Positions 395-56,500 of a DNA stretch of 64,000 nucleotides are shown piece after piece (within the stretch, counting starts at the first letter, position 1; every line of letters starts with the position of its first letter). A model generated the notes under the pieces. It made no database searches. It worked only from the letters and a program-made list of their open reading frames with translations, and was not told the origin of the DNA. A program made the position numbers and the translations under genes. This DNA comes from Podarcis bocagei (lineage: Eukaryota), in the NCBI GenBank assembly GCA_964188305.1, contig OZ076892.1, one strand, 5' to 3'.

Positions 395-472
395 AATCTG
401 TTGGGAGCCGCCCAGAGTGGCTGGGAAACCCTGCTGGATGGGTAGGGTATAAATATATTATTATTATTATTA
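395..472 (+). mobile_element. L2-family 3' tail fragment
   Basis: gagccgcccagagtggctggg...gatgggtagggtataaat followed by (att)n, the typical lizard L2 terminus. Confidence 0.65.
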
Positions 473-997
473 CCACCTCCCCACTGCCCTGCAAGATAGC
501 TGCGTGAAGAGCACCTGAAGTGGTCAGAGGCCACACTGAGAGTGTCACTCAAAGGGTAGTTGCCCTTGAGCAAACTCCTCTCCTCAGAAGGAGGCGAGAA
601 GAAGGGCAGAAGGGCCTCCCATCCCCCATGCCCTTTGAGCCACACCAGCTGCATGCAGCCCCTGGACTGGTTCTTACTCTTGGCAAGAAGGCTGCCATCA
701 TGCACTGCAAGAGACAGTTCTGTGCACACCTTATTTCAGAGGCAGCAAACCTTTTCTGCTTGGGACAGAAGACAGAATAAATACATCACTGTATCCAGGT
801 AGAGGTGGGAAAGAATCCCCAGAGACCTGCTGTCAGTCATGTAGATACTCCTGAGCTATATGGACCAATAGTCTGATTTAAGATTAGGCATCTTCCTACA
901 TCCTGGCAGTCCTCCTTTGGACCTCCATTTTAGAACAAAAAGTTGTCTTTAATGCTTCTTCTTATTGGGCCAACATCTATTGGTGTATCACTGAGAC

Positions 998-1127
998 CAG
1001 GTGCACGGAACCTTTGGCCCTCCAGATGTTGCCAAACTGCAACTCCCATCAGCTCCAGAAAGCATGGCTGAAGACCAAGGATGGTGGGAGTTGTAGTTCG
1101 GCAACAACCTGAGGCTCCGCACATCTG
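998..1127. mobile_element. Palindromic hAT-type MITE (common squamate 'ggactacaactcccatc' family)
   Basis: Internal inverted arms caactcccatc / gtgggagttgtag. Related copies at about 1760-1860, 14417-14540, 16850-16900, 24233-24361, 40715-40805, 45785-45913, 52745-52882 and 60368-60422. Confidence 0.65.
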
Positions 1128-2263
1128 GTCTAGGCAAGGAGTTTTGTGTTACTCAAAAGCTACAGACATTGGTTCAGTTATAACAGAGAGCTTTGTCTTG
1201 CTGGGATCCTGCCAAGATACGCCACCCAGAAGAGCCTCTTTCTCATGCTTCATTGGGAGAACCCTTTTTTTTATTAACAAGATTTATCAGGTGCCTTTCC
1301 AAAAGATCAAGTCAACACACAGCAATTCTGTAAATATCATATTAAAATGCATGATTTGTTCAGGTGTAAGTGGTAGAACTCATCTGCTGTGGCATTTAAA
1401 CACAATTACTTCCAACTACAGACTTTTCTTTTATAACAAACAAAAAAAAATAGATGTGTGATTAAATCCCACAGGGCATTTAACTATGACCGAATGTATT
1501 AAGGTCCAGAGCTGAAAAAACACTCAAATTTCAAGCAGTGCATCCCCCCCCCCAATTTCTTAGTACCTGGTTGCTGAGGTTTTTTAAGCTGCTGAGTAAT
1601 TGCTAGAACACAAAACTCCCAAGACCAAGTCTCTTATTCATCCAATAGCTCTGAATCACCACTATTTATCAGTCTGCCCTACCTCATAGGGGTGTCATGA
1701 TAAATGTCAGCAACAGGAGTGGGAGAAAGAAAAAGCACACTCATACTCATTCACAGCCTCCCCAGGTGCTCTGGACCCCCACTTCTGCCAACACAGACAA
1801 TGGTGAGGGATGATGGGAGTTGTAGTCCAAAACACCTGGCAAGGTAGTTTTTGGTGATCTTTAAGGAGCCCTTTGCTCCCAGGGAGAAAGTGGCACATGA
1901 AAAGTAAATCAGCAGCAAAAACCACCAAACTGAAGCAACAAATTGCTCTGTTCATAAGAAAATGAGGAACAGCATCACATTTGTAAAGCTTTGCAGCCAG
2001 TTAAAAATTTAGCAGCCACTTCCAAAAAAAACTGTGCCCAAACTTCCCTATGGTTTACAGAGGGCCCTGAGCGAGACAGCTGCGATGCAAGACAGAAAGG
2101 ATCTAAGCTTGGAAAAGTCAGGGGGAAATGTTTTCCTCCCTTGCAACGTTCAGCAACTTGTCTCCAGAAATGGGAACATGCCAGGATATTAAATGAAGAT
2201 GCTGTCCAGAGCTATAGAGCCATTCTGCCATAAGAAGGATTGATGGCAACATAACAGCAAACG

Positions 2264-2360
2264 ACTCACCCAGCCCTTCTGCTGGGACTGCTTATTTTAT
2301 ATTATATATTTTATAGAGAGATATAAATGGAAAGGGCCCTCCTACATGCAACAGCAGCCA

Positions 2361-2405
<45 letters not shown>

Positions 2406-2604
2406 CAGACCGATAAGCCAGGCATGCAAGCTCTCTGAAGGGACATGCCGCCACCTCTTCCTACACGCTCCGGCCATAACCTCAAATACAAAACTTATTT
2501 TTAAAATGAACACAGGAGAGGACTCCAAAGCATTTCACTCTGTTCAAGCAAAATCCCCACCCCCACCCGCAATCAGGAACAGCTGCCATATTTGGGTGGG
2601 AATG
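2264..2604 (-). promoter_or_regulatory. Candidate muscle-type internal promoter/enhancer with splice donor
   Basis: E-box CAGCTG 2580-2585, CArG CCATATTTGG 2586-2595, MCAT GGAATG 2599-2604, CACCC boxes about 2556-2568, MEF2-like TTATTTTTAA 2495-2504, minus-strand CTATAAAA 2316-2309, donor TGG|GTGAGT at 2270/2269. Confidence 0.45.
2362..2402. repeat. (AC)n microsatellite, about 20 units
   Basis: Seen directly in the sequence. Confidence 0.97.
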
Positions 2605-3268
2605 ATCCAGAAACCAGAGACAGGTTTAGTGGGGGAGGCTTAAAAACGCAAAATCCAGCCTTAACAACCGCCTCGGCAGAAAATACTTGGAAGCATAGCA
2701 TAGAGCTTCAAATACAGAACGCGGAGAGGATGCCAGAGCGCTGGCTGGCTAGCTCTCACTTGGACAAAGGCGCAAACCTTTCCCTGATTCAGAGAAGCAA
2801 AAGCAGCAGGAGGAGGAAAGACTGGAGGGCAAAAGAAAAGGGAGGGCAGACACTAACTGCCTTGCAATAGGAGGGCCAGCATGTGGCCCTTTTCCTCACA
2901 CCAGCCTTCCCCAACATGGCACCTTCAGGATGCACTGACCTACAACTCCCGTCAGCCCCAGTCAGCACAGCCATACTGTAGTTCAAAAAATCTGGATGGT
3001 GCTACACTGGGAAGGGCCATTTTTAGACAGTAAATATGTGAGGGGAGGGGAGGGAGGTCTACCTCTTCCCACTCTTCATCTTAAGACTCTTACCAGATGC
3101 AGAAATGGATGGCTTGACAAAAGTACCTTCTTCCCATCTAGACCAATGAAAAGTTTTTGTGAACTTAAAAGCTTCTGTACCATTTTGTGACATTTGAGTT
3201 CGCCCAACAGAGAAACTAAATGTGTGTGTGTTTGGGGTGGAGAATGCCAGTCGGTGTTCCTATTCACA

Positions 3269-3480
3269 GGAGTCAGTGTGGTGTAGTGGTTAGAGTGCTG
3301 GGAAATCAGGCTTCAAATCCCCACTCAGCCATGATGCTCACTGGGTGTGGTCTTGGGCCAGCCACTCACTCTCAGCCTAACCTACCTCACAGGGTTATTG
3401 TGATTAAGAAATGGGGAGAAGCTTGTAGGCCGTATTGAGCTTCCTGGAGAAAGGTGGGATATAAATGGAATGAATGAATG
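3269..3480 (+). mobile_element. MIR-like CORE-SINE
   Basis: tRNA-like head gtggtgtagtggttagagtg...ttcaaatcccc, core ctcagcctaacctacctcacagggtt, (gaat)n tail. Other copies at about 26495-26640 (+) and 53335-53540 (-). Confidence 0.75.
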
Positions 3481-5223
3481 AGTGAATTTGGAAGCAAGTC
3501 CTGCAGAATTGCCCAGAAAATACACAGAATTCATCTGTTTGTTATTCTCTGCTTCCCTGCCCTCCTAATGATGCTACCAGGCTCTCATTTACAAGATGCT
3601 TCTCTCAAGACCCATTTCTAGTATCCTGTTCCCATTCTTCATGGTAAACCTGCTGACCTCTTTCTCCTACCTAACAGCTGGTTTATATTTTATCCAAGTG
3701 CAAATGCAACACACACATACACACTTGCAATAAATGTATCATGCAGACACACCAATTAGAAAGCCAGGAGAAGTCATGGCTTCTTGCCTAATGTACTTGC
3801 CCGTTCCCCCATCATGGCTAAAGTGAGAATGGAGGATTAGATCAGGAAAACAAGAGAGGGTGAGTGAGTGGTGGCGGCTAAACACTCTCTCCCTAGTGCA
3901 GTTCCAACAATCCAGTTTGGGGGCTCACAGCTGCTTTGCACCATATTAAAAAGTGGGAGGTCCTATCTCATACCCAGCAGCACAACATTTCGTTTGGCAA
4001 TGACCTCTCATAGCTTCTCTTCTCCCCTGTAGAACCAACCATGGCAACAGCTAAGAACACCTTCCATATACTTCCCTGGCTGTTTTGACCCTGGCGTGTT
4101 GAGCAAATATCTCCCACTCTGGGCACCATAGAACTGAGAATGTTTCCTATCAAATAGCTCTCTCTCCTCAGATAGCTCTCTCTCCTCAGACTCAGCTGGA
4201 CAGACTAAACCCAGAGCGATAATTCATGTCAGTTTGGCTTAGCTTGGCATCCCCTGCTCCCCCCCCCCTTTCTTCCTAATTACAGGTCTGAACTGTACAG
4301 TCTTGGCTGTGGGTGCTACAATTTTTCACTGAGAAAAACTCAGCCTTTTGCCCACAGTTGGAGACTGTTTTCCACATGTGAACTGAACACTACATCATAG
4401 CCCTTCTCAAGCCTCTGGCTACTTCTGCTTTTCTTGTTTTTGAAATGTGCAACTGTCTGAAGCGTGAGAAATTGCAACCAAGCCAAGTTCCTAGGCAGGG
4501 GGGTAGGGGGGAAAAACCAACGTCATGACAGTTTAAAAAGTACAAAAAACTAGCTTAGCTTGGTTGACAACTGTCAAAATCAGTATCCAAAAGAAAACAA
4601 TGCCCTTTTATAGATGTTTGGTGCTGCAAACAGACTTGGCACAAAAGCTTCTCTTTTCCAAACCCTTTCTTTACTTGGAGATTTAAATAAAAAGTTTTCA
4701 GCAACTTCTTTTCTTCTCTACGGATTCGAAAGAGCCTTGACTAGGCAGTTGGTTGGTTTTTATCATTTATGTAATGTTGTTAGCCGGAATTTGCCTTATA
4801 CCATTTCCCTCTTAGCAACACATTTTCCCATCTATGAGCTCTGCAGCTACCCACACTTAATCACAATCTTTCAGAAGAAAATGTATAATTTGCTTCTGAG
4901 TGCATGAACATAATGCTACTTGAATAAGTCAGTTCAAGACACTGAATATTTTTACGTAAGCAAGATAATGACAGGTTTGTTCTTGTTTGAAACCCTCCCC
5001 ACACCTGAAAAGAAAAAGAAACCCACCAACCCAACACTGTTTCTATCAAGACCATTAAATCTGCCTACAAAATGTAACCCCCTTTCAAAGGGAAGGAGAA
5101 GCCAAATTTTAACAAAAGGGGAAAAAAGTCAGGCATGCTTTGTACTCCAAATTACATCAGTCAGTCAACAATGGATTAACTCCTCACTTCCTCCCCAACT
5201 CCCTTCCTACAAAAAAAGTAATT

Positions 5224-8200
5224 TTATGTCTGATATGGCAGCGTGTGGGGACCAGGGGAAACAAATACCTCATTATCTGGAACCAATCCATCCGTTTCAG
5301 CAGGAGGCCCTTCAGCAACGAGGGAAGAAAAGGAGGTACTTTCTGAGTCTGGCACAGCAGAGGTCAGCTCCTCCTCTCCACTTGCAGGTGCTGCAGAAGA
5401 GGGCAGCTGTGCTGTGCTGCAAACTGTATCCCACACTGCTCCAGGTGCCAGAGAGAAACCAACTTCTGGTGGCTCTGGCACACCATCTGCACCCAATGGC
5501 ATAGAGATGGCAAGGCCTTTAATCGCTTGGGCCACCTGAACAGGCTCCTTGGTGGAGGTGGGCATTGTGGCATTGGCCAGCTCTTCCAGAGCAGGCCGTT
5601 CCTCTCTACTTAGAGGCATATTTTCCAAGGAGAATGGCACAGAAGCAGAGGACATCTCCTCTGCATTTGGTAAGAATGGTATCAGGTCCTCTGCTTTGGG
5701 CTCCGAAGTGACTCCTGGAAGACCATCTTGACCACAAACTTCTTTATACCTGGACATGCAGGCAGCATCCACAACAGGCCCCTCTGCCTCTGGGGTTGAA
5801 GCAAGTGAGGATGGCAAAGGCAGGGTGGAACATGTTACAGCTGCTGGACCATCAGTGATGGAAGGCCCCACTCCAGTAGAAGGAAAGGGGTCAACAAGCT
5901 TCTCTGGGCTATCTGGAGGGGCATCAAGAGTCTTGTCACTAGGGAGGGGACTGACAGAAGCAGATTCCTCTCCAAAAGAAGAGGCCAAGTCTTCTGAACT
6001 GGGCTGTGCAGCAAACAAATCTTCAACAAAAGCTTGTGAGTTGGTACACACAAACTTGGCACTACATTCCTCATCCTTTGTTATCTCACTGTCCCTGCTC
6101 TGCCCAAAAAGGAACTCCAAGTCTCCAGGTTCCAAGCAATATCTCTTCTCTTCCACTGGGCTGCCTTTGGCTGCTGCTCCCTGCTCAACTACCTCTGGTG
6201 TTTCCTCCTGGAGAAGGGCTGCACTTGCTGACACCTCTCCATCACACAGCAGCCTTGTTAAAGCCTCAGGTTGACATACAGCCTTCAAGTTCTCAGAGGA
6301 GCCTACATGTTTTAGAGGCTCCTCAGAGTCCTGCAATGCAAACTCCCTTTGTGAAGGCACCCAGGAACTATCTACATCCTCTATGTCACTAACGTGGCCC
6401 CCACAAAGGAGGTTTTCTTTATCCAGTTCTGCAACTTCATCCTCAGAAACCAGCTCTGGGACATCCCAGTTGGAGAAGTCAGTCCTTTCTGATGGGTTGA
6501 GCTCATCGCAAGCCTGCAGCTCTTTCCCCATAGCACTCATCATCTCTTTTGCCAAGTCAAAATCTGGTTGGGAGTCCAGCTCCTCAGCAGTTGTGGCAAG
6601 TTCATCATGGCTCGGGGATGCCTCCTTTGCTCCATAGCAAATGACAGGCTGCATTTGCTGCTGCTCATTTTCTCTGCCTATGGCAAGAACATGGATGCAA
6701 GGAGGTGGTTCTCTACAGCAAGGGAAATCAACTGAAGCCACAGGTTCACCCATGGCAAAGTCCAACAATCCTTTGACCCTCTGGCTTTCTGCAGGGTCAT
6801 GACCTGCCAACAGTTCTGCCCCATACTCCTCTATCTGACTAACTAAGGATGAGAGTGATTGTTGGGATACAGCATCTTTTTCAAGCGGAGGACTGGAAGA
6901 CGTCACCTTTTCAGAGTCACCAGAAGTTTCCCGTTCAGAGTAGCACTCTGAAAGGGTAGCTTCTGCTGTACTTACTGCTTGAGAACCACATGTGGCATCA
7001 AAGTCCTCCAGATCTGAGACCACAGCAGAGTCTGCCATGCTGACTTCAAGGTGAGTCAAGGGCTGGGAGGCTCCCGCCAAGTCCTTCTGCATGTCCAGCC
7101 CTTCTGAACACTGATTAGCATCCTGTACCTCCAGATCACCTGGAGCCACTCCATCCCCTCCTTCTTCGACCATGCAAAGCTTTTCTAGTTCAAGGAACAT
7201 CTGCACAGAATCCGTGTCAGAGAACTGCTCTGGGGCAAGAGAGATGGCACAGGCTTCTAGGCCAGAAGCAAATTCCTCCTCTTCAATTTCGGCTGCTACA
7301 GCTTCAGCATTGCAGGCACCAGCCTCCTCCTCCTCCTCAAGAGTAGCGTTTAAGTCTTGGTGCGTTTCCTGGGGAACGAGAGCAGAGTTGACAGCTCGCA
7401 GCTGTGAGTCATCCCACAGCTCTTGCCAGTGAGATGGGTGGTTAGAGGTCCCTTGGACACCAGCAAAACTCTCTACAGCTTCCGTAAGTGTCACGGCTGG
7501 AACACTTAATTGTTCCTTTTCTTCAGAAATATCTGTCAAGTAACAACTTCTTTTCTCAGCAGCCTTCCCTGACAGCAAGCCTTCCTCCCACTCCTCCCCA
7601 GCCTCCATCATGATCAATCGCTCATCCTCCTCAAACCTCAGCTCCGACTCAGTCTTTTCCCGGAGGTTGGGGGCGATGAGAATGCTCATCCCTGGGTCCA
7701 GGAGCTCTTCACTCAGGCAAGGAGACAGTGGCACTGTTTCTATGACACAGTCTGTGTTGTCTGCCTCCAAGGTGTCATGATGCCCACTGCCAAGGCCTGC
7801 TCTGATGGCATTTTTCATCACCCTTGGCCACGTGGCGCTCGAGAGCCTGTGGTCCCGCCGCCTGCCGCCGGTCAGGTCAACTACCATGTCCTCTGGTCCC
7901 AGAAGAGGCTGGCACTCATCCTGAGACAACTCACAGAAGGCTTCGCTTAGCTGCTTCACTTCCTGAATTTCTGGAACTCCAGACAGTTTGGGAATGTGCT
8001 CCAGGGTCAACGGTTCTGACATGCATTCCCCCTGGTCGGACTGCCTAGGGCTCTCTGCCAACATGGCAGTGGACTCCTGCTTCTCTTGCAAGGATGGGTT
8101 AGAAACTCCAGCTTCTGAGACTTCACTCAAGGAGGCCTCAATTCTCTCAGCAAACTCGGGGAAATTGGGTGGCATAAAGGACTTCCATGACCGCCTGTTG

Positions 8201-8580
8201 ACATTCTCCTTCTTCTCTGGGTTTGGCCGCCGCCTTGGGGGTGCCGGTGCTGACTTGGAGACATCACTGCTAAGTTTCAAGGCATCAAAAATGACCCTCT
8301 CGTCTAACTTTTTGCTCTCGGGTGCCTTTGATTCAAAGACACTGGGTGCCCCTAAAGTCCCATTGCTAGAGATTGTGCTGCCATCCCCTTTTTCAAGGGT
8401 ACTCTTGGAAGGCTGGCTAGTCTTGGACCCCTGATCAATTTGCTCATTTATCCTCATGGTGTCGTAGATGGACCTCTGAGGGACGTAACAGTCTTCTATA
8501 TACCCATCCTCATCCTCTCCTTTCCCCAAGCAAGCAGGACTCTGCCTTAAACAGTCAGGCCTGCTGAGTGGCTTGCCCAT
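5224..8580 (-). CDS. KIAA0754: KIAA0754-like single-exon ORF nested in the MACF1 intron (1118 aa from MGKPLS; acidic, mostly disordered); internal phase-0 donor at 5269
   Basis: Uninterrupted 3.36-kb ORF with a strong Kozak context (aagtATGG). The N-terminus MGKPLSRPDCLRQ...YVPQRSIYDTMRINEQIDQG and the position in this intron match what I recall of KIAA0754. The ORF-track start at 8652 is a TTG. Confidence 0.85.
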   Translation of the reverse strand: MGKPLSRPDCLRQSPACLGKGEDEDGYIEDCYVPQRSIYDTMRINEQIDQGSKTSQPSKSTLEKGDGSTISSNGTLGAPSVFESKAPESKKLDERVIFDALKLSSDVSKSAPAPPRRRPNPEKKENVNRRSWKSFMPPNFPEFAERIEASLSEVSEAGVSNPSLQEKQESTAMLAESPRQSDQGECMSEPLTLEHIPKLSGVPEIQEVKQLSEAFCELSQDECQPLLGPEDMVVDLTGGRRRDHRLSSATWPRVMKNAIRAGLGSGHHDTLEADNTDCVIETVPLSPCLSEELLDPGMSILIAPNLREKTESELRFEEDERLIMMEAGEEWEEGLLSGKAAEKRSCYLTDISEEKEQLSVPAVTLTEAVESFAGVQGTSNHPSHWQELWDDSQLRAVNSALVPQETHQDLNATLEEEEEAGACNAEAVAAEIEEEEFASGLEACAISLAPEQFSDTDSVQMFLELEKLCMVEEGGDGVAPGDLEVQDANQCSEGLDMQKDLAGASQPLTHLEVSMADSAVVSDLEDFDATCGSQAVSTAEATLSECYSERETSGDSEKVTSSSPPLEKDAVSQQSLSSLVSQIEEYGAELLAGHDPAESQRVKGLLDFAMGEPVASVDFPCCREPPPCIHVLAIGRENEQQQMQPVICYGAKEASPSHDELATTAEELDSQPDFDLAKEMMSAMGKELQACDELNPSERTDFSNWDVPELVSEDEVAELDKENLLCGGHVSDIEDVDSSWVPSQREFALQDSEEPLKHVGSSENLKAVCQPEALTRLLCDGEVSASAALLQEETPEVVEQGAAAKGSPVEEKRYCLEPGDLEFLFGQSRDSEITKDEECSAKFVCTNSQAFVEDLFAAQPSSEDLASSFGEESASVSPLPSDKTLDAPPDSPEKLVDPFPSTGVGPSITDGPAAVTCSTLPLPSSLASTPEAEGPVVDAACMSRYKEVCGQDGLPGVTSEPKAEDLIPFLPNAEEMSSASVPFSLENMPLSREERPALEELANATMPTSTKEPVQVAQAIKGLAISMPLGADGVPEPPEVGFSLAPGAVWDTVCSTAQLPSSAAPASGEEELTSAVPDSESTSFSSLVAEGPPAETDGLVPDNEVFVSPGPHTLPYQT

Positions 8581-8899
8581 ACTTTTCAAAACAATAAAAG
8601 AAAACAGAACAGAATAGAATGGGGGGACCCGCAAAGAAGAGTCCCACAACAAGCAAAAAAAAAACCGCTCCCCTGCCTCACAAGCTCTCCATTCAAAGCA
8701 AAAAGAAATAGATTACGGTGGAGCAGGGTGTCTTTTAAAAATCCCTAATAACGACTTGGGAGGCCACAATTTTGTATTCCACAGAAGTTACAGAGCTTTC
8801 CAGAGAGAAGTCATCTTCCACCGTGGAAGTCCTTGAAAGAGGCAAGGCATTCCATGGCTCCTGCGGAAACGCTAGCAGTCCAAGGCCAACACATAAAGC

Positions 8900-10630
8900 C
8901 GTTTTTGCCGATCGCTATTTGCAAGCCCTCCGCCTCCTCCGGTTGCTCGGTAGGGCTGTTCTCCTTAAGGCAAGTCTTCCAGCCCGCTCCGACAAAGCCT
9001 CTTCCAGAGGGCGCCCCGGTCGGAAGCTCAGCAGCAGCGGCGGCGAGGAAAAGGCCAGCTCTCGGGAAGGCGGCCGCAGAGCGCGCTCTCCTGGCGGAAC
9101 AAAGGCCCGGCCTCCCGCGCGCCTCCATGCCCGGGCAGAACTGCGCTTTGCAGAGGCTGCTTCGCCGGCCCCTCGGCGCGGCGCGGCTGGCTCGGACTGC
9201 GCCTGGCGGCGGAGATCCCTCGCGATCCCAGCGCAGGAAGTTCTTCATGCCGGGCGACGTCGGGCGCCTCCAATCTGCCCAGCATCCTCGGCCAGCGGGC
9301 GGGATAACTGGTTCAGCGCCGCTAGCAAAGGCCCTGGAAGGTAGGCGGGCAGATCTCCCCGTGCAGTCTGGAAGCGACCGGGGATCTCGTGGCGAAGTCT
9401 GCTCGGCGTTTCTCCCTCGCTCAAGGGCGGCGGCAGCCGGCGGACAGAAGCAGAGGCACCCCCGCAGGGAACGGGCCGGGACAGCCGGCTGCCGCTGTCC
9501 TCGCCGGGCTGCTCTCGGCTCCTACCATGCTCGGGCCGCGCAGACGTAGCTCTCCCCGCTTGCTCGCTCTCCAGGAGGGAAGTTTAGTTGGAGCCTTTTG
9601 TGCGTCGCGGCGGCGGCGGCAAGAGCGGGGCCCGCCTCCCCCGGCAGCCGTCCCCGCCGAGCCGAGCCGTGGGCTGCATGTCAAGCGAGCAGCAGGAGCA
9701 GGAGCCGCCGCCGCCCCCTCTTCTGTGCTCCCGAACGGGGCTGCAGCTGTCACGGCCCTTCTCAGCGCACAAACTTCTTGCCGGGGGAACAAAAGGCTGC
9801 GCGGCGAGGCTAGCTCGGATGGAGGGATGCAGAGCGCGCGACGGCTGGCTGGCTGGCAGGCCGCTCCTCTTGCTCGCCCTTGGAGGAGGCCGGCGGGGCG
9901 AGACCCAGCAGCAGTCCGCCCCCCGCCCGGGAAGCCCAACTCCGGCAGGAGAGCTCCGGCCCTCAGCGCCAACGGCTGCGAGATTCCGGCTGGGCCACCG
10001 AGCTGCCAACTCCGAGGGGAGGGGACGCGCCGAGTGGCGAGGAGGGAGAGAGGGGAGGGAGGAAGGAGGCGGGGACCAGCAGGCGAGGCGAGGCGGGGAG
10101 GAGGTAGGATGGGGGCGGCCTTAGTGAGCCCCAGGCGGGCTCGGCGAAGCCAACGGCCACGGGCGGATGGAGGCGCGGAAATCGAGCCCCGCCAGTCAAG
10201 GACCCGGCCGCTCAGCAGCGGAAAAGGCGGCTGGGCGCTGAGCCTGGTCCGCGGGGGAGAAAAGGAATATTGCTGGTTCAAGGGGAGAAACAACCCCTCC
10301 CGCGCCTTGTCTGGGTCTCCCCCTCCTCCTCTGCCCCCTTCGCCTGGGGCGGGGGTCGCAGCGCAAATCCCTTGACAAAGAGCAGCGACGTCTTGCTTCC
10401 CTCCAGCGCGCCCCTCCGCTGACTCCGGTTCGCGGAGGCCAAGACTTTTTTGAGGGGCGGGAGAGACGCCTTGCGATCAGCAACCGCCCGCACGACTGCC
10501 AGCGAATCTCTCCTGCAAACAACCGTCCCCCAAACCAGAGAAATATAAGGTTCTGCCTCGAGTAGCACACTGGTGCCGCAAAGATAGTAGAGACGTTTAG
10601 TTGGAGCGTGAGAACGCGCCGCTTGAACAT
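8900..10630. promoter_or_regulatory. CpG island; probable promoter and 5' leader of the KIAA0754-type transcript
   Basis: Very high GC content and dense CpG against a CpG-poor background; multiple GC boxes (GGGCGG, GGCGGGG); lies immediately upstream of the minus-strand ORF. Confidence 0.88.
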
Positions 10631-11270
10631 GTGCAGAGTGCAGAGCAAACAATCCTCACAAAGCTGCAATTTTCACTAGGGGGAGGAAATGATAGTACCT
10701 CACCACTGTCTTCCTCCTAGGCATACAAAACCACTATTATAAATTGCTGACGTTGGGTTTTTCCAGGAGAGGGCAGGGGAAATAACTTGCAGATGAGCTT
10801 ATTAATTTGATGGAGCAGGGGAGGTACCTGTGCAGAGTAAATCCCTCTTCCTTAGCTCTTATTTGCTATCCAGCAATTGGCTAAGGAGTTGCAGGTCATT
10901 TACAGCCTTACAGCTTTGACAACACTGTATGAAAGCATCCTCACTTCCATTTATTTTTTTTAAAGCACAGGTGTGCACGTCTAAGAAAACAGCAGGACAG
11001 GGTCAAGATGTGTCTTTATGTGGAAATATCTGCACAAAGGTATGCTAGGATATTTCAAATGGGGCTAAAGTTTCATAGTTGGATTTCAAAGGCGTTTGCC
11101 CGACATTTCCCTTGCAACACACCACCATAGGAGGGCCATAGCAAAGACCCAACATAACCTGCTTCTAACTACATGATAGGATTAAGCCCTGTGAAACGAA
11201 GAATAAAAGAGTTCCTCTTTTGGGGGCCTTTCTCACACAACATCACACCCACAACCAGCCCACATGGTAC

Positions 11271-11959
11271 TGAGGACAGGATCACACTTCAAAACGACCT
11301 TGACAGATTAGAGAACTGGGCCAAAACAAACAAGATGAACGTTAACAGGGAGAAATGTAAAGTGTTGCACTTGGGCAAAAAAAATGAGAGGCACAAATAC
11401 AAGATGGGTGACACCTGGCTTGAGAGCAGTACATGTGAAAAGGATCTAGGAGTCTTGGTTGACCACAAACTTGACATGAGCCAACAGTGTGACGCGGCAG
11501 CTAAAAAAGCCAATGCAATTCTGGGCTGCATCAATAGGAGTATAGCATCTAGATCAAGGGAAGTAATAGTGCCACTGTATTCTGCTCTGGTCAGACCTCA
11601 CCTGGAGTACTGTGTCCAGTTCTGGGCACCACAGTTCAAGAAGGACACTGACAAACTGGAACATGTCCAGAGGAGGGCAACCAAAATGGTCAAAGGCCTG
11701 GAAACTATGCCTTATGAGGAACGGCTAAGGGAGCTGGGCATGTTTAGCCTGGAGAAGAGGAGGTTAAGGGGTGATATGATAGCCATGTTCAAATATATAA
11801 AAGGATGTCACATAGAGGAGGGAGAAAGGTTGTTTTCTGCTTCTCCAGAGAAGCGGACACGGAGCAATGGATCCAAACTACAAGAAAGAAGATTCCACCT
11901 AAACATTAGGAAGAACTTCCTGACAGTAAGAGCTGTTCGACAGTGGAATTTGCTGCCAA
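11271..11959 (+). mobile_element. CR1 LINE fragment: C-terminal part of ORF2 (end of reverse transcriptase), frame still open, truncated at both ends
   Basis: [12 protein letters not shown]...KCKVLHLG...EKDLGVLVD...[15 protein letters not shown]...[11 protein letters not shown]...[11 protein letters not shown] are hallmark CR1 ORF2 motifs. Confidence 0.95.
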
Positions 11960-14900
11960 TCTGGCTTCCCTGCAACATGACTATTTGCAGAAACAAAGCA
12001 CCAAGAGCAAGCAAAGGTGAAGGTTTCTAAGCTCTAGCAACACTGCAGGAGCTGGCAGGAAAAACATTGCACAGGCGTTTGCCTCAATGAGGCCCTGAAT
12101 CCTTAATGCTCAATAGTCCCAACTCCTTGTAGTTACACAGTTTTCAAGCTTTTCTACATTGAACTTTGCCCACCTTGTCATGTAGGAGGGCATCATTCTC
12201 AGCTCATACCAGGTGTTCTGGGCTTCTCCCTGGAAACCAAAAGCACAGCCTGCAACACTCTGTGGCTGGTGAAGGGAGTTGCTGGTAGTCTTGGGGCAAA
12301 CACTCTTTCAAGGAAGATTGTCGACCTTGATTTGAGGAACCCACAGTGAACACTTGACAAAGCACAGATTTCCTCATTATACGATCTGGAAATCATGGCC
12401 AAAGAGCAAAAAGCAGTTGCCTCATCTGCAACAGCACGTTCACACATCTTCTCCCCACAAAACCTGCAAGGTTGTGATTACTGGTAAAAGCAGCAACTGA
12501 ACCCGGATTGTATGGGTGGGGGGAGAAGTGGGCGAGTGCAATTCACTTTCCATGCAAAGATAGCTCACACTCCTACCCAAGAAATTACCCTCCTAGGAGC
12601 TTCCTCCCACAATCAACCGAAGCAACCCAGGCCACAGGTATGCTGCATAGAGCAAGTGCACAATCCAGCAAGGCAATTCTGGGGGAGGAGCAATTCTTGT
12701 CAATCAAATCAAACTTTAAATATGATTTCCTCCCCCAAGGCGAGGGAGAAAACTTGGCAAACAGTTAAGGGATGGGCCAAGTAAAGTTGATCCAGATTAT
12801 CTGCTTGGATTCTGGTGCCACAGAGCATTCATCTCATTAACCAACATTTCATTGCATCATTTATACCAAACAGGAAATTTCACCACTAAAAAGCCCTATA
12901 GCAACAGCTGCATACAGGGTTAGAGAGACTGCCCAGCCTCCTCTCTTCCCAGAGCACCACCAGCCAATATACTGTTTTGTGTGCACACAGAGACCCCCTT
13001 CCTGGCCTTTCCCTTGCTTGGCTCAGGAGCGCAGCAGACAGCCAGACATTACAGTCACAGAAGAACGTCTAGGCTAGCTGTAATAATTGGATGCAGCTGC
13101 AACAATAATCTGGCCAGTAGTTTCACCAAAGCAGGCCCTTTATGTGCCACCGCCGCCTTCGCTGTTCAAACTGCCTTCAATTGCGCAGGGCGAGTTTTTC
13201 TTTTTTAACTGCTCTCCCAGCTTCCTGCAGGAAGAATCTGAGGAATTCCATGTGAGGTTTCCCCCCTCACTTATAAAAGGACGATGTGTTGAGTTTGCAG
13301 CCAGGAATTCTTTGGCTATTTCCTCATCAGGTCACATGCCAACAAAAGGAGTGCCAATATACATTCATTCCCCTCCTCCTTGGAAGAGGGAATGTAGGCC
13401 TATCCCCTTCCCCACTAAAATCAAATATGCACATAAAGATACTGACATCGAAATGGGTCTGTCCTTCATCACACGAACTGACTCTCTTGAAGCTGAAATA
13501 TTTGCTTTGAACTGGCATTACTTCAAGCCTGCTTGGAAAAATTCCAAGTGGCAACAACTCACACAAGATGCCCACGTATAAGAATGGCAACATTTCTTCC
13601 ACTCCACCCACTTCCTTGAAATGGTCTCTAAAATTTCAGCTCTGGCAACTAAGAATCTGAAATATCTCTTCTCCCTCCCCAACTGATTCTTTAAGATGGG
13701 GTAGGGAACCTGGAGTCTAAATACTACAGACCTCCCTTTCTGGTCCTTGGGAGTCTCCACAGGCCACACCTTTCACTGGTCCTGCCTAAAACCCCTATCC
13801 TAGAGCAGTTTTGCCTGGCTTAAATGTATCCTCGAACTTGGATAATGCCTCTTCCTTGCCTGGAGAGAGTAGGAACTAATGCCTCCCTGCTCCTATATAT
13901 GTTTTTCAAAAACCTGGAGGGACATTTTACCTGGTGGGGGGGGGGTTCATAACAAGAGGGCACTCCTTTAAATGAATAATGGCTACTTCCTTATGACTGT
14001 CTTCAGCACTTTGAGTGTTCTGGGGTCCTTCCAATAAGATGCTCTGAGCACCCAGAAGATTGGCTCAGGTGTAGGAGATGGGTGGAGTACAAGATTTCTG
14101 AGGGATCCATGGGGACCATGGTTCCTTTTGCATTTCTTGCAGTGTGATGTAGAAAGACCAGCCAAGCAGCCAGCTGTGGCACTGAACTATATTTACCTGA
14201 TGATGGAACTTCCAGACTCTGTATCCCCTAGCGACAATTTAGAAGGAAGGGCGTGAGAGAGAGGGAGAACAAGCCAAAGGCACGTCTGCTAATTTCAGTT
14301 TATTTGTGGGACTACAGTATGCCTGGTGAGCAAAGAATCCCAAGGCAAATTCAAGCAAACTCCCAAGCCCACGTGCACAGCAAAGGTTTGTTAGCTCAAG
14401 AGGCTCATCCTTTCGAGCAGCCCCAACCTGACACCTTCCAGATGTTTTGGACTACAACTCCACCAGCATGGCCATGTGATGCTGGGGCTGCTGGAAGTGG
14501 TAGTCCAAAATGCCTGGAGGACAACAATTTGGTTAGGGGGGGCACTTTTAAGTCAAAGTTGGTTTCCTTCTGTAGCCAGCAGCTTTTCACAAAGCATTTC
14601 TTTAAAAGGAGGAGCTGGGACTTTGCCCACTGTTGCACCTGGGTCCCTGCCTTGTTAAATTGATCGCAGGGTTTGCTGTAGTAGCTCAGCCATGGATGGA
14701 AAGCAGTCTACATGCTCAGAAGCACAGTGTTAATCCACATGTTTGGGGAATGTGGCTTGTAGCTACAAGCAGATTCCAGGACTGTGCTCTGGTGAGCCAC
14801 TGAGCAAATTAATCCTACAAACTGATCTTAAGTAGGGCTGTCGAGCAATTAATAAATGGCAATTGATAATTCACAAGGCAGGTGGTATGAGGCTGCTTCC

Positions 14901-30421: not shown

Positions 30422-31069
30422 TCATTATGTCTCACATGCTTCCAAATATCAAGAGCCTTTTCACAGAATACCTGTGGCAGCTGAGAGCTGTTAAAATATT
30501 CAAACCTAATTCAAGTTAAATATTTAGAATAAGTAATCCAAATAAGTGGAGGGTCATTAACCGCTGTGGGTTGTGAGGGACAGATGTTTTTTAAGCACAA
30601 CATATTAAGTTTTTAGTGTGTTGCAATACATGTATACACTAAGATTTAATGAATGAAGAGCCTCCTAAATTGGACCACACAAGTTGCTCATGTGAATGAA
30701 AGAGTCACCCAGGGAGAATGACACGGATGGAAATTCACCCTGTGCTCTTTGTTTTCTGCCCAAGCTGGCCATGTTTATACAAACAAGTGATATACAAACA
30801 AGTGATAAAGGTCTTTTAAAAATAAGATTATACTATTTCTATAAGTCTTTTATCTTCCTTGTTTGTATAAAAACTGCTAAGGTAAGCTGAAAGATCATAT
30901 ATGGCAAAAAGGAAAGGGAAAAAAAGAATGAGCACAGGGGGAATTTTCACCCATGGAGCAGTGCAGGCCCTTCACTCTAAGGTCCCAGGGTGGGTTGCAG
31001 CATTAAAAACAACTCATCAGTAGATTCAGCATTAGCCAGAAGCTACCTGCAACATAGCCAGGTCCTTAC

Positions 31070-32541
31070 CTTGAAATCTGCCAGCTGCTGGCTGATGACC
31101 TCCACTTCTGTCCCAACGACCCACTGCAAAGCTTCGCTGTCTTCGGCTGTGGCTGTCATGTAGTTCAGCTCCTTTAGTTTGTCATAGAAGTCCTTGACGC
31201 GAGCCAGCGTTGTGTCCACCTGCTCCAGGCGACTTTTGCCTCTTTCGTTCAGTTTGCCACATTGCTTATTTAAAGTCTCCAGCTCACGTTTCAACCCTAT
31301 GAGGTCGGGACTTCCTTCATCATCCAACATCTGCCTGCATTTCTCTTCAGAAGCTTGGATATCCAGCCTCAGCCTCTGAAGTTTGCCCAGGAATTCATGG
31401 ACATCCTCTGCTTGAGACTGCAGACTGTCCATGTCTCTCCCAACAGAGCCCATGCTGTCCAATTCGTCATCTAGGTCAGCCAGCTGAGAGAACATCTCCC
31501 GAACATGATTATTAAACTGGCCAATCCCTTCAAGCTTGCTCTCCATAAGTTGACAACATTCGTTAACTTTTTGCTTGACTGCTTTGAAGTCTTGCTGGGC
31601 GACCTCAGCTTGACTTAAGAGATGGGAGGAGTCGGACCCATCTGGAGCATCTTCCACCAGGCCCCGAGTGAAATTCCTCAGGTAATCCACCTGGGGTTCC
31701 AATGCCTGGATAACTTCCTGTTGGGCTCTCAGCTTCTCCAAGTTCTTAGTGCTGCAGGCCTGTGGGCCAAGAGCCTCATAGATTTCCAGCTGATGCTTTG
31801 TCCCATCTAGTTTCTTCTCAATGTTCCTAAAGCTTTCTTGGAACTCCTTCAGCCTTTGCGACATTTCTTCCAGGGAACCGGTCTTTGCTTGGAGTTCCTC
31901 TGTAATAGCGTCCATCTTCTGGTTGATCCCCGCTTTCTCATCCCTAACATCATCCTCATCCATTTCTGATGCATTGATGAGGATATCAGCGGCGCTGTTC
32001 AGCATCTCCAGAAGGGAGCGGCGCTTCTCCACATCGCTCAGCATAGCCTTTGACCTCAGGAGTGTGGCTTCCAGTTGCACTGGATCCAGAGTGACTTCCA
32101 GCTCTAGCATCTTTGACCTGCAGTCCTCCACCCACGGGAAAAGGTCTTCCACATGACGCTGGTATTTCTGAGCCTTCTGTAAGCAGTCCTTGAGTTTAGC
32201 ATGTCGGTCTGTGATCTGTTTGCTAAGCTCCTCCCAGTTTGCTTTCAGGTTGACCAGCTGGCTTTGCAAACTGGCTCTCTCCTCGCCGGGATGAATGGAG
32301 TGAAGCAAAGACTCGCCCTCTACCACAATCATTTCATAGGAGCCCCTGTGCTGGTTGAGGCTCTTTTGGAATTCTTCCTGCTCCTGGATCTGAGACTGCA
32401 GCCTCTCCAGCTTAGCTGAGATAGGCCCGCTCTGTGCCTGCTGCCTCAGCTTGTCATCCAGCCAAGTGTGGAGCTCATCAAACATCTGTTGGAATTGCTG
32501 GGAGCTGGCAAGCACTGTCTGCAATCGATTCATCCGGTCAC
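31070..32541 (-). CDS. MACF1: MACF1 exon, 1472 nt, (G)DRMNRLQ...SQQLADFK
   Basis: tttcag|GT acceptor, AAG|gtaagg donor, phase 1-0; several spectrin repeats. Confidence 0.97.
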
Positions 32542-35500
32542 CTGAAAATTGGAGGAGGCAGGAATACATTGTTAAGACATGCATTTCATAAAGCTAGGAA
32601 CCTCTCCTAATGTTCCTGATGCACAAACCTACATTCCAGTCTTTGTAAATAAGCACCTTTCAGTGAAAAAGCAAATTGGTATACCATTAAAGGTAAGGCA
32701 TTCTTATAAACCTAGGAAGCTACAAATCACAGAACATAGGGTCTATTCAGGGAAATTTAATTGATTCTGTAGGATCCCCAGAACATCTGTTTCCTTAAAA
32801 AAAGCTTTCTAGACCTTACATTTACATAGAGGCAGTGGTCAAAATGGGATGGGGTGGCATTCCAATTCTTTTTAGAAAGACAAAATGGAGCCCAGCTAAC
32901 CATCCCACTTCTTCTACTCATGCGTTAGGGAAAAATACACCTGAGAAGTGGCATTGGCTGGGGCTTCCTATTGGGCCTGTGTTGGTGACACACTGAGTTT
33001 GCTTCATAATGTGTGGAGTGGCCCTGAGGTTAAGCCTTTCATCACATCTGGTGAGCCAAGGATCTATTGGGTCCTTATTGCCCACACAACTTTCCTGGCT
33101 GTTGGGAGTCCTCCTTCTCGACTAAATGCTGTTTGTGTTTCTAAATTCTGCAAATGGTCTTATATAGTACCTGATGACCCCATGTTTTCAAATGATTCAT
33201 TTCCATACCTGCCAAATCTTCGAGCCCTTTGAGAGGGAGGGCCACTGTCTCCAAGCGCTTCTTCAGCTCATCCTTCAGGTACTGCTCCCCAATGAGGACT
33301 GAGAGCTCATCACATAGGGCCTGAGCCTCCGTGATCTCCTCTTCCAGCTGTGCCAGGTTGGACCGGATTTCACTCGTTTCTTCCAGCTGCTGCTTCACAG
33401 CCTCCGGCTGGGTGCTGATGGTGGACTGGGTGCTCAGGCACTGCCCAGCAGCCTTCACCTTCTCAGACAGGCCCTGGAGCAGCTCTTGGTACTGGGTGCT
33501 CTTGACAATGGCCTGGTCGATTTGGCTGGAGCGTGAGTTGAGCCTCTCTGTGAGTTCAGTCCACTTCTGGTTGACAGCCTGGAGCTCCTCCTGCATGTTA
33601 CTGATGGATGGAGACCCTTCGCTGGGGCTGGTGAGTATCCCTTGCGCAGCCTCATTCAGCTGATCATACTGGGGCTTGCGGGACTCAAACTCCTTCAGCA
33701 TAAACTAAAATGGGGGAGGGTGGTAGAGAAACAATGCATAGGTTTTTTAATGAGAGACCAAGATGGTTAAAAAAAAAGATGAAAGAAGCCAAGGAGAATG
33801 CAACCATAGCACTGTCAGTCTTGGTTGCATAATAAAACACTTTTTTTAAAGCACCAAAAGAATGGCTGCCTTCTTTTTTTTTTAATATAATTTTTATTAA
33901 CAGGCCAATCAAATCACATTAATTCCAAATCACATTAATTCCAAATTATACAGCCAGATTTTTAAATTTTTGTTGGGGGTACCCATACATCAAGCTCCGA
34001 AAGGGGACCAAGAATGGCTGCCTTCCTAAACCTGATGAAAATAATGACTTCATGTTACTACTGGGCCATTTACTATTATATACTGGCATTAACAGCCCGG
34101 GACCAGTTTACTTATAGGATCACCCTATATATGCCCACTCAGCTGCTTCGAACTGTGGAACTGATACTGTTACAAGTGCCGCATAATGCTCATTCTGCAA
34201 TAAATCAATTTTTAGAGTGGCAGCACTTACACTTTGAAATTCCCTGCCCATTGACATCAGGCTGTACAATTTCTGGTGCCTCCTTACTTGCTTTTAACTG
34301 CTTTTATTGATAACTTTAATGTTTCTTTTAATTTTTGTAAAACCACTTAGGAGGTGCTTTGTTTTTTACAATCAAGCAGCACATATGTGATGTGATGTAA
34401 GCAATGCCTTTCCTGAGAATATCAGTGGTTTCCAAACTTCCCATTTTCACATTAATTAATCTGAGAACACGTTCTACCCCTCAATACACTGCAAAGGATT
34501 CTAGGGCGGAGGTGGACTTCAGGCTTGTTGGATCTAATCTGTTTTTTCACCAGAACCCCAAGATCTACCAATGAGAGCCGGGTGCAAAAGACATGCAGGG
34601 TGCCTCCAGACATTCCCTATTTGGGGCATTTAAAGTGGATTAAAGGGTTCAGTCACCCAAGTGCAACAAATCCATTTTTTACACAAACTCCAATTTATAA
34701 AACAAGTCCCACTTTGCAGCACAGAAAATGATGGGGAAAACTGTGGGATGAATGATTGACTAAGAGGAAGATGTATAAACCCCCTGGAAGCAAATCAGGG
34801 TGAATGCAGAAGAAATGCTAAATGGCATATATACAAATAAATCAGAAGGAGTACACAATGAAGACCAGACATAGTTGAACCACGATGTAAACAAATTAAT
34901 ATGAGTGCTGAATAAATAGAATGTCTGGAGGAGCCCATGGTTAGAATTAAATACCAGGGTGCCTCTGAGCTTATTCTTTTCCGAGCTCAGTCCTTTTGCA
35001 CAAAAAATCCACTCCCTGTTAGCCATCTCCATTTCAGCAGCCTAAATTAGGTGAGAAAAGTCATTTTGTTGTTGCTAATGTTGAACAACTGAGAGATCAA
35101 CCAGTTGCTGACCCCTGTTCCAGGACACACTCTTGGTTCTTGCAAGTGCTCCAGATAGCCTCACATGACCCGAGTGGATCCTGGAGCACACCTAACATTT
35201 CCCTGAGAGTGCACACTGGAAGGTAAGTGGTAAACGAAAGCTTGCCTGCCATGCCTGATTTGATTCTGAATGAGAAACCCCTGATAAGCTTCCAAGGAAG
35301 TCCAAGGCTCCTTGGAAAGCTGAGGTCTGAGCAATGAGGCAGCCAAAGATGAACTGTCCTCTTCATTGAGGAAGATACATCCAATGAGCTGCAAAGGAAT
35401 GTGATGTCAGCTGATGAATCAATTAAACAAGTTAGTCTGCTGCAAGAGTTTAGGTTGGCTGACACACAACTAAAAGCATATTGAGTTGCTATAAACCATC

Positions 35501-53500: not shown

Positions 53501-56500
53501 CCAGAACGTAGTCCAATACTCTGTCACTATGCTATACCAAGGCTATGTACAAATCATAAAAAAAATCAACAACATGGGAGGCCCACATTAAGCTCCAGGA
53601 ATGAAGACATATCACAGTGGTTCCCAAAGTTCCCACCTTCCATGCTTTATATTTAAAATTTTACTGCTATTTTATTTTTCATGCATAATTCTTATCTGAA
53701 TTTTATTGTGTTCTTATCTTCCTTAGTGGGTTGTGCAAACTGCTCTTCTGAATAACAATTGTTTTTTTGTTTTTGTTTTTAAAAAGGGGGGGTTGGGTGG
53801 CATTGGAGATGAGTTTATGGAACGGGGGGGGGGTGGTGTTGGCCCCAAACTTTTGGGAACCACTGTCCTATGGCCTGCTTGTTCTACATCCAGAGGTCTA
53901 CACCTTCTTTTTATCACTGTTCTTGTACCTTGGAATGGAGAGAACTGTATCGTTTGGTGGCATCGTCCAACTTGTTCTTCACCAGCACCCCAGTAGCTGA
54001 AACCTCAGGCCTTGGAGGCCCCCCAGCAGTCCCAGCTTCTGCTGCCACCTTCTCTGCATCCAGCACTTTCTGCCCGGACATTGTCACAAAGCGCAAATCC
54101 CCCTTGTGTGAGATTACATCTTCTGCAAAGCTGCTCTGCCGCTGGAGCAGGGGCTGAAGGGACTCGAGGCTGCCGTCTCCTGCACGCATCCTTTCCAGCT
54201 CTTGCTCGGCCTGCTCCAGCCAAGCCTCAAACTCCACATGGTCCCGGAGGAATTTCTGCAGCTCATCCCGGAGCGCCTGTGATTGCTTGAGCCGCACCTC
54301 AGACTGAGACAAGGTGGTGGCATACTGTCCCTTCAGCTCCTCCAGTCTCCCCTGCAGCCTCTGCTTCTCCTCCGGGGCAAGACTGTGGCCTTGCTTGTCC
54401 AGGAAGGCCTGGGCTGACTGCGTAGCTAGAATGACTTCTTGCTGCTGAGAGAGAAGCTCCTGATGGCGGACCTGGAACAACAGCAGCAAACAACCAGGCT
54501 GAAGTACATCCAAGTCCACACTGACCGCGTGAAATTAGAACCTGGGCCCTTTACAAGGCTAGGGAGGGAAACTGCAGCCACCTTCAAAAATGCAAAGCCT
54601 TCATACAGTTCTGCAGTATCGAGCCCATAGGGCTAGCCCTACTGTTAGGCAGCATGAGGCAACTGCCACAGGTGGCAAATGTTGGGGGACAGCGGGGGCA
54701 GGCCTCCCTCCCTCAGCTGTTCTTTCTGACTATCCTGATTTTACCAACTTCTGCCAGAAGACAGAGCTCCCCACAAAGGAATGCGGTTCTTGGGGATGAA
54801 AAAGGTCCCCACTCCTGACTTTCAGCAAATGTGTTCTTAGCTTAGCTGGATTTTACACCTAGATCTTTAACTCAACCCTCCATCCAGCAGACCCCACCAA
54901 CCTTCAAGCTCTCATAGTGCAAAGTGAGATCTTCTTCAACTCTGTCAGCCTCCTTGAATCCACCATCAGGGTTATCTTGGACTCTTCCAGTCACTAGACC
55001 CACTCGGTGGTGTTCAGCTTCTGTGAGCTCCTTGGGCTGCTCTAGTGATGCCACCCAGTGCAGAAGAGATTCAATCTTACTCTTATTTTCTTCAAAGTCT
55101 TTGACAGCTCTAATCTGGAAACAGAGCAGAGTGCATAGGAAGCTGATAGATTACAAAGCACAGAATGGGTAAATATGGGCTAGAATTTTGCATGCCGCAG
55201 AAGCATCCCACTACAATTCACAGAGCACTGGATAACACATAGCCTCTTATAAGTTTACCCAACTCCCTCCTAATGCGAAGGAGGGATCTTCCACACCAGT
55301 TCCAGGTTGTGTGGTGCTGTACCTTTTCTGTTTGCTGTTGCACCACAGTGCTCACAGCACTCTCAAGCTCCTTCTGCGCCGCCTCCGTCCTCTCTTGCAG
55401 GGACTGGTACTGCTCCTTGGCCTGGCAGAGCCTTTCCTGCAGGGATGCCAGTTCCTTGGGGTCCAGTTTGGTCCGGTTCTCCTCCAGGAACTCCTCTGTC
55501 GCTTTCAAGACACCGGCAAAAGAGGCTGCTCGGCTGTGCAGGCTTCTCTGCAAGTCCTAATGGCAGAAATCAAAAGAGCAGCAAAGAGAGTGACCATCTC
55601 TGGCATAACTGTAAGCTGGTATTCACAGACTTGTAATGATGCTGAGTTCTTGAGGCAAGAGGCCACTGATTTCTGAGCAGAGATTATGCTTAGATTTCAT
55701 GCTGTCCTGTTGATTTTATTAGAACTGTTGAATTGTTAGTTTGCTTTTATATATGGTGCACCAACTCTGCCCTGGGATTACCGGCTTGAGGGATGTGTTA
55801 CAAACGAAACAAAGCAAATAAACAAGCCACACACCTTGCATTGTAACAAAGACAGAACAAAACATGAGTGCAGATGCTGGAGTGTGGAAAGAAGAAACAC
55901 CCAGCAAACCAGCCTGGTCACAAGGTGTGTTTTGCCACCTGGCCTACCAGCTCCATCAAGGGAAACACAGTGCAGTGGTCCAGCCTCCTTCAATTGTGTT
56001 CTCACCTTAACGTCACTCTGGCTCTGTTGCAGTACAGAGAGGTCCCCTTCCCTCACTGCTCCCTGTGGATCCACCAGTCTGTGCTCAGCCTGGTTCATCC
56101 AAGTGCACAACTCCTCCAGTTTCTGGCTGCGTATTGCCTGCTGTTCTTGAAGTGTCTGTTTAGATTTTGGATTGTTTAACAAAAACAAAGCACCTGTTAA
56201 TGCCGTTCAACTCAACTGTTAAAACCACAAATACAAGCCAAACAAGTTGCAAAACAGAAAGCACTTAAGCAGATGCAGTCAATGGCTCGCAAGAGGCATC
56301 ATCTCTCTCACACACACTCTCTTGCTTCACCCTTTACTTTTGCTCTAGACAGTCATTTAGGTCCATTGTCTGGCACATCAAAGCATATATGGTTTAAAAT
56401 GGAGTCATTTGCCATCTAGGTTCTTTCTTCTGCCTTTAATTCCCTCTTTTATTCCCATATAGCAGCCCACTTCTCAAGGACTGATGTTGACCTGATGGCT

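Follow-up and report, generated by a model that had tools for sequence, protein, structure and literature searches.

Spectraplakins have been studied as cross-linkers of actin and microtubules, and loss of MACF1 or dystonin leads to severe neuronal and muscle phenotypes. Does either protein also exist in a form that is held to a membrane by lipid? The question is raised by a stretch of 64,000 nucleotides from Podarcis bocagei (contig OZ076892.1 of GenBank assembly GCA_964188305.1), here called the window; it is free of runs of N and contains the KIAA0754-type alternative first exon of MACF1. The product of this exon starts with MGKPLSRPDC, and a second cysteine follows at position 17. A preliminary description, made from the letters alone, proposed that this peptide is doubly acylated and belongs to a linker between membranes and microtubules with a long acidic spacer. 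The analysis presented here finds the predicted myristoyl anchor on Gly2 plausible and, on balance, likely; S-acylation of C10 and C17 in support of that anchor is proposed more tentatively. With somewhat less than even confidence, we further suggest that MGKPLSRPDC...C could be an ancient, vertebrate-specific membrane-anchor module that arose before hagfish and jawed vertebrates separated and before MACF1 and dystonin diverged. It would define an unstudied class of spectraplakin isoforms, made by both genes from internal CpG-island promoters, that lack the actin-binding and plakin domains, are tethered by lipid, and run from membrane to microtubule by way of an acidic spacer and the distal rod.

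The N-terminal peptide and its start codon

The peptide is encoded on the minus strand, which the preliminary description had left unstated. The reverse complement of positions 8580 to 8530 reads ATG GGC AAG CCA CTC AGC AGG CCT GAC TGT TTA AGG CAG AGT CCT GCT TGC. The Met-Gly start, Ser6, Cys10, Cys17 and nearby basic residues (K3, R7, R12 and K20 among the first 20) are all present as described, and the Kozak context is indeed strong, with A at -3 and G at +4 in AAAAGTATGG. Judged on sequence, an MGxxxS string by itself is weak evidence; what exceeds chance is its conservation.

This conservation begins at the ATG. In a DNA alignment of seven vertebrates (skink, cobra, turtle, kiwi, rat, frog and one teleost), the sequence 5' of the ATG is unalignable, whereas from the ATG on it is conserved, with wobble at third positions. 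Within codons 1 to 12 of these seven MACF1-type sequences and a paralogous exon of Elgaria (described below), nine codons vary, only synonymously, and there are no amino-acid changes. A purine at -3 and G at +4 are present in all seven aligned vertebrates. No in-frame ATG was found 5' of position 8580, where the frame is closed by a stop just upstream of 8652. The start codon of the preliminary description is, then, the first in-frame ATG and a conserved one, and transcript contigs run through it. Together, these results indicate that the ATG at 8580 is very probably the true start and that the isoform has the structure described below.

Two other candidates were rejected. One was an upstream in-frame start, given the stop just upstream of 8652 and the lack of any earlier in-frame ATG. 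The other was a splice acceptor at the ATG itself, where a polypyrimidine tract precedes an AG at 8582-8581; the contigs are colinear across this site, none has a loose end there, and the tract is not conserved.

Conservation of the motif and its paralogues

Among the matches listed, MGKPLSRPDCLR opens 120 of 120 MACF1-type proteins, which represent mammals, birds, reptiles, frogs, coelacanth and teleosts. G2, S6 and C10 never vary in these proteins, nor in the motif-bearing paralogous groups. C17 likewise holds throughout the MACF1 type, save for a one-residue shift in one sequence, and shifts slightly in position in the paralogues. Conservation of these four residues across vertebrates had been offered earlier as a check on the prediction; it is found, and it extends beyond MACF1 into the paralogues. 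An exhaustive HMMER search with residues 1-160 against 1.84 billion representatives returned only 52 clusters, and every cluster with a named organism is vertebrate.

A second type of exon carries the same motif. This paralogue reads MGKPLSRPDCLRQNP-x-CVGK, and its exon encodes about 420-500 residues. A search seeded with this second-spectraplakin exon found the motif in 119 of 122 proteins, 117 of them with exactly MGKPLSRPDCLR. In Elgaria multicarinata (L007:10001-11464), the paralogous first exon has 487 codons, starts with MGKPLSRPDCLR, and is nested in a gene of 7902 residues to which the CH, plakin, plectin and spectrin families are assigned. In the boa Candoia aspera, the two exon types lie on different contigs, and one bird protein of the second type is named 'dystonin-like'. 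Because vertebrates have two spectraplakin genes, the second paralogous exon most likely lies in dystonin. Both vertebrate spectraplakin genes thus seem to have an internal-promoter isoform of this kind. Many of the second-type proteins P0202-P0243, which are mostly Logan open reading frame (ORF) calls, extend about 38 codons 5' by way of an in-frame ATG. If used, this extension would bury Gly2; it is probably an artefact of taking the longest ORF.

The motif is also present outside these two types. A hagfish protein of 1899 residues begins MGKPLSKPDCLG...C and continues with spectrin repeats, and extra teleost groups begin, for example, MGKPLSRPGCFRQSPCC and MGKPLSRPCCFRQCPCC. In these hagfish and extra teleost proteins the start is MGKPLS[RK]Px, and none lacks C10. 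Across all groups, G2, K3, P4, L5, S6, a basic residue 7, P8 and C10 are fixed, together with a second cysteine near 17. Since the motif occurs in hagfish and in jawed vertebrates, the module is older than the hagfish-gnathostome split, and the first 12 residues are under extreme purifying selection in all paralogues. Some teleost paralogues have added cysteines at 9, 14 and 16 (CC at 16-17; C9 and C14), resembling the clusters typical of S-acylation. Because the paralogues share the motif, the prediction of a lipid anchor is stronger than the earlier reader knew.

The teleost proteins P0145, P0146, P0151, P0155 and P0157-P0160 are divergent MGKPLSRPxC paralogues with extra cysteines and a His-rich run. 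Two teleost paralogues have been named 'Si:ch73-305o9.3' and 'daf-12-interacting protein 1-like'.

An alternative first exon within the spectrin rod

Residues 1-190, run through a word-indexed protein search, matched 250 relatives; the best, from the skink Lerista edwardsae, is 95% identical. Over the same residues, identity to mammalian proteins named KIAA0754 homolog or MACF1 isoforms 6/7 is 80-83%. (The human proteins in the match lists, P0070 and P0219, were left out of the alignments.) By this sequence relationship, the product is the N-terminus of 'MACF1 isoforms 6/7', the KIAA0754 type, and an orthologue. It has the features of that group: a large, nested first exon, spectrin repeats upstream, and a junction at which ...VPDNE is followed by xFQKEQVDP.

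The exon lies inside the gene rather than at its 5' end. Upstream of it, and likewise on the minus strand, spectrin-repeat coding sequence occurs near 31.0-33.7 kb and 53.9-54.5 kb of the window. Orthologous exons are nested in genes of 7176-7663 residues in loggerhead turtle, kiwi, poison frog and rat; of these four genes, only that of the kiwi has recorded CH, plakin, plectin and spectrin families. A turkey gene model and the hagfish protein, both with this N-terminus, contain only spectrin repeats thereafter. A first exon within the spectrin-rod region yields an isoform without the actin-binding (calponin-homology, CH) and plakin domains. The lack of an actin-binding domain agrees with the position of the exon within the rod and with the spectrin-repeat sequence upstream of it.

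The exon product is strongly acidic (net charge about -137, isoelectric point 4.17), in agreement with the long acidic spacer proposed at the outset. It consists of a conserved module of about 160 residues followed by about 940 acidic, poorly conserved residues, and Pfam found no family in it. An AlphaFold2 model of residues 1-200, built from an alignment of 20 sequences, contains no folded domain (mean predicted local distance difference test score 55, predicted template modelling score 0.17). Residues 1-37 are modelled mostly without regular structure, with one helical turn of three residues at 15-17, and so the N-terminus should be accessible.

Transcripts, splice donor and promoter

Transcript evidence comes from two studies of a close relative rather than from the source animal, and the two runs that provided contigs are taken to be RNA because they contain a splice junction. 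The contigs are colinear with the window from 5269 to 10010 and 10037, with no joint on the way, including at 8581. At 5269, the last base of the exon, they leave the window at a GAG|gt donor in phase 0, after 1104 codons, and continue in frame as TFQKEQVDP on the coding strand, in letters absent from the window. The turkey gene model (P0046) has the same junction, ...VPDNE followed by LFQKEQVDP. The junction in the contigs and the matching one in turkey thus indicate that the predicted donor is used, in frame. The in-frame donor of the preliminary description is in this way borne out, as a splice into a spectrin-repeat exon. This partner exon is not in the window, and a tblastn search of positions 1-5268 found no MACF1 coding exon. 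If the intron is instead retained, the frame gains 14 codons and stops at 5224 (5224-5268), giving an exon-only protein of 1118 residues. This read-through product matches an 'isoform 7' type entry from mouse (1115 residues, P0082).

At the other end, contig depth in run X1 is 72 at the ATG and then drops stepwise, first to 44, next to 35 and finally to 0 past about 10040. Stranded raw RNA reads are few (12 and 47); their first mates lie on the plus strand, as is the case for RNA of the minus strand, and none extends past 10025. The region is a CpG island, with an observed/expected CpG ratio in its flanks of 0.14-0.20. This exon is a true first exon under an internal CpG-island promoter with dispersed start sites. 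Within the island, at 9040-9433, run X24 has a few stranded RNA reads of the opposite orientation; their number is low, and they may reflect divergent or antisense transcription.

The longest 5' untranslated region (UTR) contains 10 upstream ATGs. Their frames have at most 145 codons, and all are closed by 8678, which leaves about 100 bases to the main ATG. These upstream ATGs may have a regulatory role in translation, or the transcripts that are translated may be those with shorter 5' UTRs.

Fit to the rules of N-myristoyltransferase

At the true start, Met1 is followed by Gly2, as in a substrate of N-myristoyltransferase (NMT), and removal of Met1 is expected, residue 3 being Lys rather than Pro. 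The remaining positions can be compared with a kinetic study of HsNMT1, in which all of the tested human peptides starting with GK were myristoylated on the glycine (Riviere et al., bioRxiv 10.1101/2021.06.22.449375). There are ten of these: ARF6 (GKVLSKIF), HPCA, HPCL4, VILIP, NCS1, TMEM106A, TMEM106B, GAPR1, NKD1 and NKD2 (10.1101/2021.06.22.449375). For the other human GK peptides, kcat/Km ranged from 330 to 12,000 per second per molar (10.1101/2021.06.22.449375). The motif deduced for substrates with Lys3 is GKXXSX, in which it helps if residue 5 is hydrophobic and residue 7 basic; the S6-K7 pair is important, and NMT pockets 4 and 5 are said to take all side chains (10.1101/2021.06.22.449375). 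GKPLSRPD fits this motif, with Leu5, Ser6 and Arg7. Lys3 is tolerated in such a context, Ser6 is allowed, and residue 7 is not Pro; it is invariantly basic, Arg here and Lys in some paralogues. The preliminary description had cautioned that Lys3 is not optimal for NMT. That remains true in that Lys3 is less favourable, but the concern is largely answered by the myristoylation of all tested human GK peptides and by the fit to GKXXSX. As for a second lipid, the cysteines fall within the range known for dual acylation (classically a cysteine among residues 3-6, but as far as residue 26 in endothelial nitric oxide synthase, eNOS), and the classical Met-Gly-Cys is absent.

Points against a lipid anchor, and other readings of the N-terminus

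Several points weigh against a lipid anchor. The classical PROSITE pattern PS00008 is G-{EDRKHPFYW}-x(2)-[STAGCN]-{P}, and Lys3 violates it; this failure is not decisive, because ARF6 and HPCA fail as well and yet are myristoylated. Position 4 is not Pro in any of the ten validated GK substrates, and residue 7 is Arg, where the tested variants had Lys. C10 and C17 lie farther from Gly2 than the cysteine of the classical MGC motif. The 10 upstream ATGs of the longest 5' UTR may restrict translation, and the RNA comes from a close relative, in contig runs taken as RNA from the junction alone. Lys3 is accepted by NMT but is less favourable than small uncharged residues (10.1101/2021.06.22.449375). 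GKPLSRPD is absent from the human GK-peptide table of the same paper, whose text claims to cover all such human proteins (10.1101/2021.06.22.449375). The N-terminus is also absent from the HeLa myristoylome of Thinon 2014, in whose supplements a scan for GK starts gave internal matches only; the only MACF1 entry there is a different one, G5087, modified post-translationally in a caspase-dependent way. The searched supplements of two other NMT proteomics papers contain no match to the peptide, and the literature searched yields no report of lipidation for this N-terminus. Finally, all of residues 1-50 are conserved, and the constraint is therefore not specific to lipidation and could reflect a binding interface.

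This last point leads to the main rival, in which the conserved N-terminus is an unlipidated binding motif. Residues 1-50 would be a docking peptide, C10, C17 and C31 would possibly bind metal or act in redox chemistry, and Gly2 would be just a part of the interface. Residues 27-49 are in fact more conserved than residues 1-25 (0.98 versus 0.87), invariant blocks reach residue 146, and AlphaFold2 predicts short helices in disorder, which are typical of binding motifs; the absence of the peptide from the myristoylome tables examined is also as expected. However, docking does not need an exact placement of Met1-Gly2, and yet the start is fixed in MACF1, in the second type and in hagfish. In addition, the sequence fits the experimentally deduced GKXXSX, and the extra cysteines that teleost paralogues have in this segment suit S-acylation better than a fixed metal site. 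Docking, with the whole 1-150 region as a binding module, is compatible with the lipid-anchor reading; docking by an unlipidated peptide seems rather unlikely.

A further reading keeps the membrane and dispenses with myristate. In this case Gly2 would not be an NMT substrate, owing to Lys3 and Pro4, and S-acylation of C10 and C17 together with the basic residues would provide the anchor. In its favour, all paralogue groups keep C10 without exception and C17 almost without exception, some teleosts have extra cysteines, Lys3 is less favourable for NMT, and Pro4 is without precedent among the validated GK substrates. Yet G2, S6 and the basic residue 7 show no more variation than the cysteines, and every tested human GK peptide is a substrate. 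Moreover, according to the kinetic-trapping model, soluble proteins usually need an initial membrane-affinity signal before DHHC enzymes can act. This reading is considered improbable.

The weakest alternative, that the ATG at 8580 is not the working start, so that the exon is mostly untranslated or initiation occurs elsewhere and Met-Gly is never N-terminal, could draw on the 10 upstream ATGs of a 5' UTR of about 1.46 kb and on the shallow read depth in both bulk RNA runs, but is very hard to reconcile with codon-wobble conservation that begins exactly at the ATG in seven vertebrates, a conserved Kozak context, the lack of an upstream in-frame ATG and the stop just upstream of 8652, the closure of every upstream ORF by 8678, and depth steps that suggest the existence of shorter 5' UTRs.

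Proposed mechanism

In the preferred reading, that of a lipid anchor, methionine aminopeptidase would strip Met1, and NMT would acylate Gly2 during translation, GKPLSR fitting GKXXSX. K3, R7, R12 and K20 would contribute electrostatic affinity for acidic membranes. Transient membrane contact would then allow DHHC acyltransferases to S-acylate C10 and C17, giving a stable but reversible attachment like that of eNOS. The long acidic tail would act as a spacer between the membrane anchor and the spectrin rod and, presumably, the microtubule-binding C-terminal end. The microtubule half of this linker rests on the known architecture of MACF1, because the C-terminal end lies outside the window.

If this is correct, the lipid-anchored isoform, with neither an actin-binding nor a plakin domain, would have another role, that of fastening microtubules or the spectrin rod to membranes. 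It would also differ in which mutations and which knock-out designs hit it and which leave it intact. The peptide is identical from teleosts to mammals and is present in the paralogue of the second spectraplakin gene, so the question is common to both genes.

Comparison with known lipid anchors and spectraplakin isoforms

The anchor belongs to a well-known kind; lipidation here is a prediction, a sound one, that extends to the paralogues. Among myristoylated proteins, ARF6 (GKVLSK) is close to this peptide (GKPLSR): the two share Gly2-Lys3, Leu5 and Ser6, and each has a basic residue 7. The differences are Val to Pro at residue 4 and Lys to Arg at residue 7, and the proteins are otherwise unrelated. 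Other substrates that start with GK (the HPCA/NCS1 family, TMEM106A/B, NKD1/2 and GAPR1) share Gly2-Lys3 and Ser6 with it, and they too fit GKXXSX. The predicted dual acylation resembles that of eNOS, which has myristoyl-Gly2, palmitoyl-Cys15 and palmitoyl-Cys26. Both have Gly2 with two cysteines 8-24 residues away and no Met-Gly-Cys, and in both myristate would come first and reversible S-acylation after. However, acylation is proven in eNOS and predicted here, the spacers are unrelated, and the (Gly-Leu)5 repeat is absent from the peptide of this exon.

Within the spectraplakins, isoform 3 of dystonin/BPAG1 (a3/b3) has a conserved N-terminal myristoylation motif, and there too an alternative first exon supplies the putative myristoyl anchor. 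That exon, however, is 5'-terminal and precedes a CH domain (CH2), the plakin domain and the entire rod, whereas the exon described here lies within the rod, contributes about 1100 residues and leads to a protein with neither a CH nor a plakin domain. By analogy, it may work like dystonin isoform 3 but is not a member of that type. MACF1-4 and MACF1c likewise lack a functional actin-binding domain. In MACF1-4 plectin repeats replace it, and MACF1c is described just as being without it; the present isoform differs from both in that it begins inside the rod, with a conserved N-terminal module of its own. Nothing structural separates it from MACF1 isoforms 6/7, formerly a separate gene, KIAA0754. 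A 2021 review of MACF1 lists six isoforms and makes no mention of KIAA0754, isoforms 6/7 or lipidation. The isoform is named in databases and yet is not discussed in that review.

Coordinates of the locus and islands in the acidic region

Features of the KIAA0754-type first exon of MACF1 and its surroundings in the window
Feature	Position	Strand	Basis or remark
Coding part of KIAA0754-type alternative first exon of MACF1	5269..8580	-	1104 codons, acidic, mostly poorly conserved
Start codon ATG in context AAAAGTATGG	8578..8580	-	First in-frame ATG; conservation begins here
Proposed lipid-anchor peptide, codons 1-17, MGKPLSRPDCLRQSPAC	8530..8580	-	Sequence and conservation
Gly2 codon	8577-8575	-	
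Ser6 codon	8565-8563	-	
Cys10 codon	8553-8551	-	
Cys17 codon	8532-8530	-	
Conserved N-terminal module, residues 1-160	8101..8580	-	Anchor peptide and helical motifs 38-49, 94-104, 141-151
GT splice donor, phase 0	5267..5268	-	Joins ...VPDNE to spectrin-repeat exon outside the window
Unspliced 5' UTR, up to about 1.46 kb	8581..10040	-	Colinear contigs, several likely start sites
CpG island with internal promoter	8801..10700	.	GC 0.61-0.72, CpG observed/expected 0.83-0.92
Upstream MACF1 spectrin-repeat coding sequence	31046..32584 (ORF bounds)	-	tblastn; Pfam Spectrin E = 4.5e-27
Further upstream MACF1 spectrin-repeat coding sequence	53917..54519 (ORF bounds)	-	tblastn; Spectrin E = 5.7e-9

The acidic region contains two conserved islands. 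One covers residues 285-325 (7606-7728, minus strand) and reads PLSPCLSEELLDP...REKTESELRFEEDER; the other covers residues 451-470 (7171-7230, minus strand) and reads FSDTDSVQMFLELEK. Both look like short linear motifs.

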